From the sequence record MF459647.1: a stretch of 64,000 bases of DNA; one strand, 5' to 3'. The translations under genes and the position numbers were made by a program. Under the pieces are notes generated by a model. It was not told where the DNA came from. It did not search any database and saw only the letters and a list, made by a program, of their open reading frames with translations. Within the stretch, counting starts at the first letter, position 1, and each line of letters starts with the position of its first letter. Below, one piece after another: positions 2 through 40,704 of this stretch.

Positions 2-349
2 CTACCAAAAGGGAAGTACCACTGTACTGTCATTTATGACAAACGTGAGGAACTTGATAAGCCGCTGTGCGACATCGACCCTGAGCAAGTCTTTGAAGCA
101 CACGTCGTGGAGGTTAAACCACTCGGAGATGCCCTGGTCTTTACTATGACGTCTAAAGATATCTATGATGAATTTAGACGATTGCAGGAAGCCGGATATC
201 AGCACAGTTTCCCTGAGCTGTTGGTTCACATGTCAATTTGCTACGACTTCAGTGCGTACGACAAGTTGAAGGTGGAACAGTTCATGGGCCGATGGATAGG
301 CCGCAACATTCAGTTCTCTCGCGAATCGTTACAACCCGTTAAGTATTGA
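2..349 (+). CDS. Hypothetical protein, 5'-truncated by the window edge
   Basis: Frame is open from base 2 (LPKGKYHCTV...) through the 107..349 ORF; a terminator hairpin follows. Confidence 0.7.
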   Translation, partial: LPKGKYHCTVIYDKREELDKPLCDIDPEQVFEAHVVEVKPLGDALVFTMTSKDIYDEFRRLQEAGYQHSFPELLVHMSICYDFSAYDKLKVEQFMGRWIGRNIQFSRESLQPVKY

Positions 350-3243: not shown

Positions 3244-3645
3244 ATGAAAAAGTTTATCGCTCCACTTGTTGCTGTTCTGCTGTCTGCTTGCGTTGCCCAA
3301 CCGAAGCCTGCGGTAGAAGTTACCTATGAGTGCTCCAACTTCACCATGGGTCGTATCACCTCCCTGACTGAAGCGCCGGCACCGTCAAAGATTATTCCGG
3401 TTAAGCAGGTTGTTGTTCAGAACGATGAAGGTTACTTCATTCCGAAAGGTGGTGCGTTCGAACGTGACCGTTACTACTTCTGGTTCAATGAAGACGCCAA
3501 CACACAGAAAGCCGTCAGTGGCAAATTGGCCATGACTGAAAAAGATAACAACTTTGTTATCTATGCTTTCCGTACTCCGTACAACGGCACCAACCCGCAG
3601 GACGTTGTGGGTTACATGGCGCTGATGAACTGCGTGAAGAAATAA
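3244..3645 (+). CDS. Predicted lipoprotein
   Basis: MKK, hydrophobic stretch and LLSA-C lipobox. Confidence 0.75.
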   Translation: MKKFIAPLVAVLLSACVAQPKPAVEVTYECSNFTMGRITSLTEAPAPSKIIPVKQVVVQNDEGYFIPKGGAFERDRYYFWFNEDANTQKAVSGKLAMTEKDNNFVIYAFRTPYNGTNPQDVVGYMALMNCVKK

Positions 3646-3669
3646 CCTAGTGGGCTGGATATCCAGCCC

Positions 3670-3883
3670 CTATAGAAAAGTGAAAACCATTGCCATGGTT
3701 TTAACCCAACTGGTAAGAGTCCTTTGGACCGCCTCCTGTTCGAGGCCATTTTTCTATAGTCACCTCGTTAATGCCAACACATCTGATACGTAGATGCCTT
3801 AGGAATCCTTTCTGATTCCGGGAGAAAAAGGAATTTCTCCTTCTTTTTATTCCGTGGCCTTCCCGTAGTTATCTACGGGAGGG
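3670..3883 (+). ncRNA. Candidate structured non-coding RNA or cis-element (unclassified)
   Basis: 13-bp closing stem 3670-3682/3747-3759 encloses three hairpins; four further hairpins follow; no ORF; strand assumed from context. Confidence 0.4.
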
Positions 3884-3928
3884 TCCATACTACAACAATC
3901 ATTTTTATTTTTGTAAGGAAACCGTTTC

Positions 3929-4564
3929 ATGTCTACTCCTGCCGTTACGCCCATTGCCGAAGCCATCAGTGACGTTCTGTGGCCGGACAGTATTCTGATT
4001 GACTTTGAATCGTGCAGTCTCCAGCCTGACAGTGCATTACTTAGCTTTGGGGCATTGGCCTTTAACCGACATCAGGTTGCCAGTGTGTCGCATTACGCCA
4101 ACATCCCTGAGATGATGATTAACATCAACCTCGACCTCACCACTCAATTCCTGCAAGGGTTTGATTTTGATAAAGAAACTGCTAAATGGTGGCGGGAAAA
4201 GAACGGACACAACATCAAAGGGCTGTACATTGATCGTGTGGAACTGATTGACATGGTGACCCAACTGAACACGCTGTTGGCCACGGTGAAGAAGAACTGC
4301 AAAGACGTGGCTTTCTTCTGTCGTCATCCGCATGCTGACTATGTATGGTTGCGTACTGTGTGTGAACGCTTAGGGGTACGTAATCCCATCAGCTACAACC
4401 GCATCTATGACGTAGCGACTTATGTGTTCAGTCGTACCGATAACCTGCGTGGGGTTTATGAACTGGATACACCGCGCAGCAGTTTCCACCATGCGTTCAA
4501 TGATTGCTACCGGGATGCATTACAGGTTGCTACTGTTAACGAAAGGAAGATACTCGATGTCTAA
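3929..4564 (+). CDS. DEDDh 3'-5' exonuclease (RNase T / Rv2179c-like exoribonuclease)
   Basis: ILIDFES ExoI motif, ADYVWL ExoII, HHAFND ExoIII. Confidence 0.8.
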   Translation: MSTPAVTPIAEAISDVLWPDSILIDFESCSLQPDSALLSFGALAFNRHQVASVSHYANIPEMMININLDLTTQFLQGFDFDKETAKWWREKNGHNIKGLYIDRVELIDMVTQLNTLLATVKKNCKDVAFFCRHPHADYVWLRTVCERLGVRNPISYNRIYDVATYVFSRTDNLRGVYELDTPRSSFHHAFNDCYRDALQVATVNERKILDV

Positions 4565-5015
4565 GATTGCGTACATGACCTATCTGGTGAATGAGATACC
4601 AATCGTGTTTCATTCTGCGCTTATGTCGTTGGCTAAGGAGCTCGTAGCATATGAGCAACAGCTTACGATGGATGTGCTGGGAAAACAGCGTCACATGGTT
4701 CCTGTGAACTCTGTGAAGGACTTCTTCATTGAAGACAGTGTGGTTGTGGTGGCCTTTAATGAGCGGGAAGAATTACCGGTTGGGTTCTGTAGCTATTGGG
4801 CAGAACCGACCCAGGGTCGGTTGATTATCGACACGGTTTACGTTGCTCCTGCTTACCGTCAGCAGGGCATTGCCAGAACCATGTTAGCAGGACCCCTGGA
4901 CATGGGGTTCTCACTCATTGACATTCACGCCATGGCGAATAACCCCGCAGCGTTAAAACTGTATACGTCATTAGGATTTAAACCCTATATTACCACGATG
5001 ACGAAAGTAAATTAA
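4557..5015 (+). CDS. GNAT acetyltransferase
   Basis: IDTVYVAPAYRQQGIARTML motif A and N..ALKLYTSLGF motif B; start moved to ATG 4557 (SD aaaggaag). Confidence 0.85.
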   Translation: MSKIAYMTYLVNEIPIVFHSALMSLAKELVAYEQQLTMDVLGKQRHMVPVNSVKDFFIEDSVVVVAFNEREELPVGFCSYWAEPTQGRLIIDTVYVAPAYRQQGIARTMLAGPLDMGFSLIDIHAMANNPAALKLYTSLGFKPYITTMTKVN

Positions 5016-5041: not shown

Positions 5042-5530
5042 ATGTCCAACAGCTTAAGACTTGATTCCTCTGTTCCACTGGTTATTTACATGGCCAATAA
5101 GGCTATCCTGGCAAACCATCATCCCGTTTATGAACAGTTGTTAGAAAGAGGGATTATGGATTGGCGGACGACGCTTGATACCGAAGGGTTAGAGGATATC
5201 GGGATGATTTACCCGTTCTTTAACTGTCGTGACCACAATTTCGAAAAGCTTGGGGTGGTGTATCATGCCGACCAGCTGCCGAAAGAAATGTTTTCCAAGT
5301 ACGACGCCCTTACCGACATGGTTATCATTACCAAAGAAACCCTTCTGACCATGCTCGACTTCATGATGAAGCCCGAACACAATCGCGATGATTTTACCGG
5401 TGAGTACGTCAGCACACAGCATCAAATTTTCCGCGACTACCTTAACGCGGTTACTTTCGATGATAACACCATTTTGGTGGCGCTGATTAACGACGGGTAC
5501 GACTTCACTAAAGAACCGAACGATTATTAG
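5042..5530 (+). CDS. Hypothetical protein
   Basis: aaggag SD; tiles the + strand run. Confidence 0.75.
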   Translation: MSNSLRLDSSVPLVIYMANKAILANHHPVYEQLLERGIMDWRTTLDTEGLEDIGMIYPFFNCRDHNFEKLGVVYHADQLPKEMFSKYDALTDMVIITKETLLTMLDFMMKPEHNRDDFTGEYVSTQHQIFRDYLNAVTFDDNTILVALINDGYDFTKEPNDY

Positions 5531-13632: not shown

Positions 13633-13650
13633 CTATATTACTAAGGTGAA
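13633..13650 (+). promoter_or_regulatory. Early-type phage promoter containing exact TATATTAC
   Basis: cTATATTAC-taagg-TGAA; TATATTAC is the reported phiKZ early promoter consensus. Confidence 0.7.
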
Positions 13651-14542: not shown

Positions 14543-14546
14543 CTCT

Positions 14547-14590
14547 CTACCCTGGGCTCACGCCTGGGGTAGGTAGTCTGCTTTATTTTT
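14547..14590 (+). terminator. Terminator with CTCACG loop
   Basis: ctaccctggg-ctcacg-cctggggtag followed by ctttattttt. Confidence 0.6.
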
Positions 14591-14665
14591 AAGTGTTTTT
14601 TCACGGTGCGTTTAATCTATTGTATTAACTGTTCTGATGAGGATAACTTATAATTATTTTCATCC

Positions 14666-14683
14666 CTACATCATTAAGGTGAG
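14666..14683 (+). promoter_or_regulatory. Early-type phage promoter motif
   Basis: cTACATCAT-taagg-TGAG. Confidence 0.6.
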
Positions 14684-14730
14684 TAGGACACCTGATCTGG
14701 GCAGTTTAATACGTAGGGATTCGACACAAG

Positions 14731-39615: not shown

Positions 39616-40704
39616 AAACAACACTGCGCCTTCTAGTGGTGACACTAGTCGAAAAACACTCCCTAAAACGGGAAGAACTCCATTGGAGAGAATCCGTTAC
39701 TAAGTAATCCATTTCCATGCATACTTCTTTTTTAAAAAAGGAGGTAGTTATGGAAGCTGTGTGTTATATCCTCTCTTTTAAGAAAGAAGATAAAGTGAAG
39801 ACCTACGTTGGTCACACGGTTGAGTTTGAGAAACGTCTTGCTCGTCATTTACGAGAGCTAAAGCAAGGTATTCATCATAACAGTGAATTACAAGCTTTAT
39901 ATGACGATGGCTGGGAATTCGACAGCAGCAAACTCATTCCGGTTGGGAATAAGAAACTTGCTCATCAGTTAGAGCAGGAACACATTCTCGCCAACAAAGA
40001 TAATCCTGATTCAGTCAACATTGAGTGTGGTAACGACACCTTTACCAATAATCCTCGTAAAGAGGAAATAAAGGTAAAACTCGTTGCGCATCTTAAGAAC
40101 TTCATGGACAGTCTTTCTGATGAAGAAAGAAAAGAAGTGTATGGTCGTGTTGGCGAAATAAATGGGATGCACGGTCAATCTCACTCAGAAGAAACACGCA
40201 AATTAATCAGCGAGAAGGTTAAGGCTTATTACGAAGAACACGATGCTCCTGCTAAGGGCCGTAAACTTACAGATGAACAACGTGCGCTCCTTTCTATTCT
40301 AGCGTCTGGCCGTACTGGTGAAGCTAATCCGTTTTACGGAAAGACTCACAGCGACGAGACCAAGAAGAAAATAGCCGAGGCTAAAAAGGGTAATCTCCCA
40401 TCCAACACTAAATCAGTGTCGGTAAATGGGGTTATCTATAAGAGTATGTCAGAAGCTGCAAGAACGCTGGGTATTAATCCTACCGTGGCTCTTTGGCGTA
40501 TCAAAAGTCCCAACGTGAAGTATGCTGATTGGAAATGGGTTTAAATGTCCAACGACCAGAACGTGATTGTTCGTAGGGTTCAAGTGAACTCGAAATGGGA
40601 GAGCTTCTGCATAAGCAGAAGGTGATATGGTCTGATCTGCATGGTGACATGCAGCTGCAAGTAATGTTGCGGGGTGGGAGTAACGAACCCACCTGAACAT
40701 ATTG
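39616..40704 (+). mobile_element. Group I self-splicing intron (IA2-like), 1089 nt
   Basis: 5' exon ends in U, intron ends in G; IGS cactGcgc (39622-29) forms P1 with a U.G pair and P10 with exon 2 agtg; P2 and P9 have GUGA loops; P3 ctccc/gggag; P4 aacgg/ccgtt; P7 GACCA/UGGUC; P8 cttctgc/gcagaag; removal restores QLYQR|SADVFLG in frame. Confidence 0.93.
39750..40544 (+). CDS. Intron-encoded GIY-YIG homing endonuclease (I-TevI-like)
   Basis: CY...YVG...R...H...E...N catalytic domain; NUMOD3-type repeats HSEETRKLIS and HSDETKKKIA; C-terminal HTH VNGVIYKSMSEAARTLG; aaggagg SD before ATG 39750. Confidence 0.92.
   Translation: MEAVCYILSFKKEDKVKTYVGHTVEFEKRLARHLRELKQGIHHNSELQALYDDGWEFDSSKLIPVGNKKLAHQLEQEHILANKDNPDSVNIECGNDTFTNNPRKEEIKVKLVAHLKNFMDSLSDEERKEVYGRVGEINGMHGQSHSEETRKLISEKVKAYYEEHDAPAKGRKLTDEQRALLSILASGRTGEANPFYGKTHSDETKKKIAEAKKGNLPSNTKSVSVNGVIYKSMSEAARTLGINPTVALWRIKSPNVKYADWKWV

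Follow-up and report, generated by a model that had tools for sequence, protein, structure and literature searches.

Introduction

Jumbo phages of the phiKZ group transcribe their genomes with their own RNA polymerases and, where this has been studied, within a protein shell. To our knowledge, regulation at the RNA level is almost unexplored in these phages; the small RNAs (sRNAs) of the group that we know of stem from transcript mapping, and a conserved secondary structure has been predicted for just one of them. In the present study the order is reversed. A family of RNAs encoded in an intergenic spacer of Erwinia phage vB_EamM_Joad is defined first by compensatory changes, by its domain structure and by a fixed genomic partner, a pair of genes for a DEDDh exonuclease and a GNAT acetyltransferase (the exo-GNAT pair). 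The stretch of DNA that was analysed, referred to as the window, comprises genome positions 124001–188000 of Joad (MF459647.1; 64,000 nucleotides (nt)), window position 1 being genome position 124001. The spacer measures 283 nt and lies between gp124 (3244–3645) and gp125 (3929–4564); coordinates are those of the window unless given as genome positions.

In phiKZ, long-read RNA sequencing and northern blotting have shown that many terminators in 5' untranslated regions (UTRs) give rise to an abundant short RNA (<250 nt) and a rarer full-length mRNA (PMC10914365). Premature termination in 5' UTRs occurs likewise in 201phi2-1, for which eleven such sRNAs were reported (PMC11512511). Examples include a 71-nt RNA before PHIKZ221, a 141-nt RNA before PHIKZ302, and sRNA005 of 201phi2-1, which lies before a tail gene of the gp182 family (PMC10914365, PMC11512511).

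The Joad element resembles these sRNAs in belonging to a phiKZ-like jumbo phage, in being intergenic and directly 5' of a gene of the same orientation, in having an intrinsic terminator before the start codon, in its predicted size of less than 250 nt, and in a position that is conserved among relatives. It differs from them in locus and sequence, is longer, and has a four-helix junction supported by covariation where they have simple hairpins; moreover, it is known from sequence alone, with a start site that can be proposed in a single lineage (L062). With bacterial terminating riboswitches and attenuators it shares a junction closed by a helix (P1), conserved unpaired bases, and a terminator with a U tract before the ribosome-binding site of an operon, whereas no lineage shows exclusive terminator/antiterminator pairing and no riboswitch class of Rfam matches. 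Transfer RNAs (tRNAs) and tRNA-like RNAs, including the YrlA/Y RNA modules, also have four helices around a junction and stack the last hairpin on the helix that closes it. Unlike these, the Joad element is negative with tRNA detectors, its helix and loop lengths do not fit, and the phage has no Ro/TROVE protein.

Joad and vB_EamM_RisingSun are 235-kb jumbo myoviruses of the genus Risingsunvirus, distantly related to phiKZ; the paper describing them names no RNA genes, and tRNAscan-SE gave no tRNA in either phage (PMC6034870). An earlier note on this DNA had put forward the spacer as a candidate non-coding RNA outside the known families. The comparative evidence given below, with helices that covary over seven lineages, indicates that the spacer does encode a real structured RNA, not chance structure, and one that matches no family in Rfam 15. 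The family has no Rfam match and no mention in the literature examined; its kind, a terminated structured leader or sRNA of a phiKZ-like phage, is already known.

Conservation and Covariation of the Element

Exonuclease homologues (P0002–P0008) were used to locate distant relatives of the locus. Those with 79, 75, 72 and 63% identity were found on metagenomic contigs of up to 243 kb, and those with 40 and 38% identity on contigs with the same gene order. The six further lineages are uncultured metagenomic jumbo phages with a spacer of 262–355 nt at the same place and the same architecture. Joad forms a clade of five lineages with L036, L039, L040 and L041 (the Joad clade), and L058 and L062 bring the total to seven; the covariation analysis has these roughly seven distinct lineages as its basis.

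Alignment and independent folds of the single sequences gave a common architecture: a hairpin, P0; a junction closed by P1 and holding P2, a linker, P3 and P4; a second linker of 18–58 nt; and P5, T1 and a U tract. P1 has 12–13 base pairs (bp) among the lineages, and about 8 bp with a bulge in L062. The features in Joad are as follows.

3652–3669, + strand: P0, a hairpin formed by a perfect 18-nt palindrome (GGGCTGGATATCCAGCCC), 6 nt past the gp124 stop codon and 0 nt before P1
3670–3759, + strand: core junction domain of 90 nt, in which P1 encloses P2, J2/3, P3 and P4
3670–3682 / 3747–3759, + strand: P1, 13 bp with one G.U pair
3683–3702, + strand: P2 hairpin, 8 bp, tetraloop UGCC; stem length and loop differ among lineages
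3703–3718, + strand: J2/3, single-stranded linker, 16 nt in Joad and 13–22 nt across lineages
3719–3729, + strand: P3 hairpin GUCC-UUU-GGAC; stem nearly invariant, loop 3–4 nt
3731–3746, + strand: P4 hairpin GCCUC/GAGGC; loop variable, 4–6 nt; abuts the U-rich 3' strand of P1
3760–3801, + strand: variable linker, which holds a hairpin at 3780–3796
3802–3819, + strand: P5 hairpin GGAAUC/GAUUCC, 0–1 nt 5' of T1
3820–3841 with 3842–3852, + strand: T1, intrinsic-terminator hairpin with its U tract; predicted 3' end of the RNA
3854–3888 (inner 11 bp at 3858–3883), + strand: T2, a second strong hairpin, present in the Joad clade only and absent from L058 and L062
3887–3928, + strand: conserved block of the Joad clade, with ATACTACA, TTTTTATTTTT and then an AAGGA ribosome-binding site before the exonuclease ATG

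A covariance model built from Joad and RisingSun only, with the structure as first proposed, found L040, L036, L039, L041 and L058, with scores from 73 down to 40 bits and E values of 1e-13 to 2e-6, the latter for L058. In the eight-sequence alignment of the junction, 97.9% of the cells pair and 16 of the 30 pairs show changes on both sides, a figure that none of 500 shuffles reached. When the pairing partners were slid by 1–3 columns as a control, pairing fell to 35–50%. Changes on both sides affect 7 of the 13 pairs of P1, with A-U replaced by G-C in three lineages and both C-G to U-A and U-A to C-G in L041; the entire outer half of P1 is rewritten in L058. The covariation of P1 is robust, as judged from an alignment anchored by sequence. 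The counts for P2 are to be discounted, as the alignment there was fitted to the model. Within the Joad clade, P0, T1 and T2 covary too.

The strand of the RNA was assessed from three features. Eleven cells in the junction helices and three pairs in the T1 stem of L058 are G.U, and these argue for an RNA of the + strand, since they would be A.C mismatches on the opposite strand. The U tract 3' of T1 is present on the + strand only. Scores of the covariance model were 66–106 bits on the + strand and 19–28 bits on the − strand. Together, these features indicate that the RNA lies on the + strand.

The same data bear on an explanation with no dedicated RNA function, in which the spacer would hold terminators together with DNA-level signals such as an origin, a packaging site or inverted repeats that bind protein. 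P0, T1 and T2 are hairpins of terminator type, P4 with the U-rich 3' strand of P1 has a terminator-like score in all three clades, and the CTATAG at both ends of P1 is palindromic, all of which would suit such an explanation. However, P1 bases 78 nt apart are kept paired by compensatory changes, L041 loses the CTATAG palindromes and keeps the pairing, and the G.U pairs would be mismatches on the opposite strand. No terminator role falls to P2, to P3 or to the conserved J2/3, and the element is single-copy, with no second copy, repeats or iterons in the Joad genome. As the distal P1 pairs covary, the RNA extends beyond P4. We consider this explanation very improbable, and the origin or packaging signal that the earlier note had listed among its options is contradicted by the G.U pairs, the one-sided U tract and the strand-specific model scores.

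Close relatives were less informative. Joad and RisingSun differ by one substitution and one indel over 3661–3928 (268 nt), and this identity is uninformative as evidence of conservation, given that the divergence is patchy and 36% of 268-nt windows have at most two differences. A contig from one sequencing run shows 2 differences in 361 nt over 3663–4023, while its flanking genes differ by 8–10%. Among the 40 differences listed (88 more exist), only one substitution lies within the element, namely 3773 G>A in the variable linker.

Structure of the Spacer

The minimum-free-energy (MFE) fold of the spacer has an energy of −100.7 kcal/mol and a z score of −7.39, with none of 200 dinucleotide shuffles as good. 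All of the helices that the earlier note had pointed out are present in this fold at their original coordinates, the last stem extending to 3854–3888. The minus strand folds less well (z −5.84). For comparison across the genome, the 29 longest non-coding gaps of Joad (at least 140 nt) were each folded. The spacer ranks second among them by z (−6.6, mononucleotide shuffles), has the highest hairpin count (11) and is near the lowest in energy per nucleotide, which bears out the impression that it is more structured than other spacers.

The proposal that about eight hairpins make up one element held for P1–P4, P5 and T1, which form the core; the hairpins at 3652–3669, 3780–3796 and 3858–3883 are not part of it. 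The first of these, P0, lies just past the upstream stop codon in all lineages and is probably the terminal hairpin of the upstream gene. It has no U tract in Joad or in L058, and in L062 it is followed by a U-rich tail, a promoter-like site and then the RNA. Its covariation in the Joad clade includes a change of GC to UA in L041 and a rebuilt stem in L040. The hairpin at 3780–3796 occurs in Joad and RisingSun only and is disrupted by a mutation in the near-identical contig L055; the variable linker that contains it is not a conserved part. A likeness of this hairpin, with CCTTAGGAA, to a type I-F CRISPR repeat was dropped, the hairpin being unconserved and disrupted in L055. T2 is a terminator-type hairpin of the Joad clade outside the conserved RNA, and its stem motif ACGGGAG is enriched in the intergenic DNA of Joad.

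Within the core, alignments showed that the 3' part of J2/3 and the first base of P3 form a conserved motif, GGUAAGAG, with counterparts that differ by one base each in L039 (GAUAAGAG) and L058 (GGUAAAAG); the motif is missing in L062. The U-A pair of the P3 stem is U.G in two lineages, and in L062 the stem is flipped to GGAC/GUCC. P4 shows compensatory changes, with a 7-bp version in L058 and a 6-bp version in L062. Pairing of the P2 loop with GGUA of J2/3 as a pseudoknot was examined by eye and rejected, as L039, L041 and L058 do not keep it. The stem of P5 is invariant in the Joad clade and its loop variable, and L058 and L062 have a 5-bp equivalent right before T1. T1 starts with GGGAG, replaced by GGAG in L039 and by GGGGCGG in L040; its stem covaries, reading GGGCGG/CCGCCC in L040, and is 11 bp long in L058 and 14 bp long in L062.

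The spacer had been described as having no open reading frame (ORF). This is to be amended slightly, as spurious ORFs of 47 amino acids (aa; + strand) and 45 aa (− strand) do exist; among the relatives, no ORF is conserved by frame, strand or length. The differences in loop length among lineages are not multiples of three.

Comparison with Known RNA Families

A search of Joad 3400–4200 against Rfam 15 (4227 models) gave a best E value of 7.1 for rli61, whose 15.5 bits compare with a gathering score of 50, and a next E value of 7.7; the loci of the six relatives gave no match at E up to 1. The known riboswitch classes of Rfam gave no match. A retron or a Y RNA (YrlA) would lack its protein partner in the phage: the Joad genome has no RVT_1 match anywhere and no TROVE match, and there was no match to a Y RNA of Rfam.

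The earlier note had held that the cloverleaf-like domain is not a canonical tRNA, which agrees with the ARAGORN analysis (no tRNA or transfer-messenger RNA (tmRNA) genes in the window or in the six relatives). It had also suggested a tRNA mimic, that is, a tRNA-like RNA recognised by tRNA enzymes or anticodon nucleases. The four helices, the stacking of P4 on P1 in the manner of a T arm on an acceptor stem, and the annotation of the downstream exonuclease as RNase T-like in other phages are in keeping with such a mimic. On the other hand, ARAGORN was negative in Joad and all six relatives and tRNAscan-SE in both phages (PMC6034870), and the Rfam search of the Joad region, taken as far as E 10, showed neither a tRNA nor a tmRNA family. 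P1 has 12–13 bp (13 in Joad) and not 7, there is no 7-nt T loop, a single-stranded linker of 13–22 nt takes the place of an anticodon arm, and no 3' CCA is conserved. The suggestion is largely refuted by these results, and we give it almost no weight.

The same RNA was sought in public sequence data. Joad and RisingSun are the only GenBank phages that carry the element, and RisingSun is its sole carrier in IMG/VR, also by a scan for the J2/3-P3-P4 pattern. A scan of JGI metagenomes for this core pattern gave 15 matches, of which only L055, a near-identical copy, is real. The 17 pattern matches in GTDB genomes included none that passed the covariance model (best E 0.047), and hence no cellular homologue was found.

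Termination, Promoters and the Exonuclease-GNAT Pair

In terminator scans, T1 of Joad (3820–3841, then TCTTTTTATT) was recognised as an intrinsic terminator, and a U tract is present in every lineage. T1 lies upstream of the start codon in all lineages, as in the sRNAs of phiKZ type, and a promoter motif accompanies the element in L062 alone. We propose that the RNA is the leader of the exo-GNAT operon and is released as an sRNA by premature termination at T1, a proposal to which we give about even credence. The RNA would be a + strand transcript of ~180–200 nt, from P0/P1 to the U tract of T1; its conserved parts are the four-helix junction and a 3' module in which P5 is stacked on the terminator. 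Transcription into the spacer would mostly end at T1, freeing the structured RNA as a stable sRNA, and a minority of transcripts would read through T1 and permit expression of the exonuclease and the GNAT. As an alternative within the Joad clade, the exo-GNAT transcripts may start at a separate downstream promoter. The junction, with its invariant unpaired bases, is probably a binding platform for a protein or small molecule rather than an antisense seed. The earlier note had listed a leader regulating the exonuclease among its options, and both the conserved position and the terminator immediately 5' of the gene agree with it.

The RNA is confined to lineages in which a GNAT gene follows the exonuclease gene, namely the five of the Joad clade, L058 and L062. 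Four lineages without a GNAT, in which the exonuclease is equally distant, lack the RNA (L061; L063–65, which are Klebsiella phage Miami-like; L066; L085). In L085, from IMG/VR, a gap of 117 nt holds a plain hairpin and an early-type promoter.

K-mer enrichment in the spacers of Joad gave a promoter-like motif that consists of ATTTTT, a short gap and CTAYATTAYTAnnGTG. The genome contains ~25–27 high-scoring sites and almost none of intermediate score, nearly all on the + strand and upstream of genes. The motif resembles the described early promoter of phiKZ, which has a T-rich element and an extended −10 (PMC8244752). In L062, a 36.2-bit match to the motif sits between P0 and P1, from which we infer that the RNA of L062 has its own promoter and is a 5' leader of the exonuclease. 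Two other promoter candidates were discarded: the CTATAG with which P1 starts, taken as the core of a promoter (poor position-weight matrix score), and ACTACAA..ATCA as a promoter class (only two sites in the genome). In L058 and L062, the U tract of T1 ends ~25–35 nt before the start codon, which leaves no room for a conventional separate promoter past T1; expression of the exo-GNAT pair in these two lineages would thus imply read-through.

We also considered a riboswitch-like mechanism, in which the junction, as an aptamer, would bind a metabolite or signalling nucleotide, and this ligand would set termination at T1, switching the exo-GNAT pair. An aptamer-like, P1-closed multi-helix junction with invariant unpaired nucleotides is present 5' of the pair and co-oriented with it, a terminator with a U tract lies just 5' of the ribosome-binding site, and the association with a single operon is fixed. 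Furthermore, UUUUUCU of the P1 3' strand can pair with AGAAAAA of T1 in Joad, with a 6-bp equivalent in L036. However, this complementarity between the P1 3' and T1 5' strands is found in about four of the seven lineages and is absent in L040, L058 and L062. Constrained folds of all seven lineages, with the 5' strand of P1 blocked or with the 3' half alone, formed T1 and P5 irrespective of P1, and no mutually exclusive antiterminator involving the aptamer is encoded. A classical terminator/antiterminator switch is therefore unsupported. A variable linker between aptamer and expression platform would also be atypical, and no Rfam riboswitch class matches. The riboswitch-like mechanism appears improbable.

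Alternatively, the RNA could be an independent trans-acting sRNA or an sRNA from the 3' UTR of gp124, serving as a protein sponge or decoy, perhaps directed at a host defence or at a regulator that binds RNA, and not regulating the exo-GNAT pair. T1 is predicted to form constitutively, and in the Joad clade it is followed by T2 and by the block at 3887–3928, a possible separate promoter of the exonuclease gene. As P0 lacks a U tract in Joad and L058, transcripts of gp124 could enter the RNA. The neighbouring genes are of anti-defence type (Acb1, AcrVA2-like genes and a variable slot), and the Joad clade keeps three GGA motifs (P5 stem, T1 loop and ribosome-binding site); these presumably recall CsrA/RsmA sites. 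Against such an sRNA, all seven lineages have the RNA immediately 5' of the exo-GNAT pair, other lineages have lost it along with the GNAT, and L058 and L062 neither keep the GGA motifs nor offer space for a conventional separate promoter from T1 to the gene. We regard an sRNA of this sort as possible, if rather unlikely.

Several observations weigh against the proposed leader of the exo-GNAT operon. In the Joad clade and in L058, the surroundings of the element contain no match to the promoter motif, and the RNA of these lineages may instead be the 3' UTR of gp124. T2 and the conserved block lie between T1 and the exonuclease gene in the Joad clade, so that this gene may have its own promoter, uncoupled from the RNA. 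The covariance model scored L062 weakly (10.3 bits), exactly at the predicted site; by architecture and gene order alone, L062 is a probable homologue. Among close relatives, the near-identical block runs 90 nt into the exonuclease gene, and the near-identical element may for this reason be a recombination block. The co-occurrence of the RNA with the GNAT may reflect a single ancestral event, as the exonuclease tree is not resolved. Finally, metatranscriptome contigs from one RNA library show a depth over the element similar to that of the flanking genes; the contigs show that the sequence is present, the library may contain DNA, and the depth is unreadable as expression.

If the RNA were merely a terminated leader with no specific partner, its value would be modest: a better annotation and a map of terminators and promoters for the genus. 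Two cultured phages with a tractable host carry it and offer a concrete experimental target, the alignment is usable as an Rfam seed, and the RNA offers a route to the role of the exo-GNAT pair.

Genomic Neighbourhood and Distribution

The genes that flank the spacer are as follows.

3244–3645, + strand: gp124, the upstream gene, 133 aa, with a weak match to the PHROG family 'Cor-like'; function unassigned
3929–4564, + strand: gp125, DEDDh Rv2179c-like 3'-5' exonuclease (PF16473, E 4e-13)
4557–5015, + strand: gp126, GNAT acetyltransferase (PF00583, E 2e-12)

The start of gp126 overlaps the end of gp125 by 8 nt, and the domain matches confirm that the element lies directly upstream of a DEDDh exonuclease and GNAT pair. 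Exonucleases of the gp125 type are labelled RNase T-like in other phage records. A small gene of 128–146 aa occupies the position of gp124 in all lineages that bear the RNA. Searches of the flanking proteins against PDB, NCBIfam and PADLOC gave nothing bearing on the RNA.

The neighbouring genes of anti-defence type are an Acb1-family phosphodiesterase (PF23474) and, in relatives, AcrVA2-like genes. The C-terminal part of Joad gp120 occupies window positions 2–349. In GenBank, gp120 of Joad is labelled 'structural protein' and that of RisingSun 'RNA ligase'; the latter protein (L002 1692–2126) matches the Acb1 family of Pfam, an anti-CBASS phosphodiesterase, at E 2e-13. The slot 3' of the GNAT gene (5042–5530) is variable, in that Joad gp127 (162 aa) is unrelated to RisingSun gp126 (333 aa), and in relatives it holds AcrVA2-like genes or is empty. 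A weak site resembling an early promoter, CCTATATTACC, is present at about 4984–4994, just 5' of this slot.

These surroundings suggest a counter-defence neighbourhood, which motivates a reading of the junction as a possible decoy or sensor. As a sensor, the junction would be an aptamer that recognises an immune or stress signal of the host and would tune the exo-GNAT pair without competition between terminator and antiterminator; as a decoy, the RNA would sequester a host defence or regulatory RNA-binding protein. We consider a sensor or decoy tied to Acb1, the AcrVA2-like genes and the variable slot to be quite unlikely, a judgement that covers both versions jointly. If true, the sensor version would give the phiKZ-like jumbo phages their first described riboswitch-like sensor, and the decoy version would add a phage RNA decoy.

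By sequence comparison, the window is 100% identical to Joad and 96.4% identical to RisingSun. The HNH endonuclease gene gp122 (1176–2108) has no RisingSun counterpart, and gp121 there directly precedes the homologue of gp123. This difference accounts for 955 unaligned bases between the two phages, and gp122 looks like a free-standing homing-endonuclease insertion.

Roughly 20 public sequencing runs contain relatives. Four unrelated studies with such runs concern root, food fermentation, groundwater and one other organism. Sequences with 90–99% identity to Joad come from at least 13 studies, with root, food-fermentation, groundwater, bioreactor, wastewater and animal-gut data, and the genus has a wider distribution than would be expected from its two isolates.

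Additional Observations

The promoter-like motif occurs on the + strand of the window at 13633, 14666, 20965, 27806, 33347, 36082, 42042 and 63776, sites that are apparently unannotated. In six spacers of Joad, a strong hairpin is followed by TTTTTATTTTT directly or 13–19 nt on (genome positions 13249, 14273, 18094, 127902, 168744 and 202831, the fourth and fifth being window 3902 and 44744), with a start codon no more than 20 nt later at four of the six.

Strongly negative z scores were also obtained for other spacers, at window 14543–14730 (−4.5) and 40545–40701 (−5.1) and at Joad 88058–88221 (−7.1) and 76855–77100 (−5.5). The spacers at 14543–14730, Joad 88058–88221 and Joad 76855–77100 could hold further structured RNAs.

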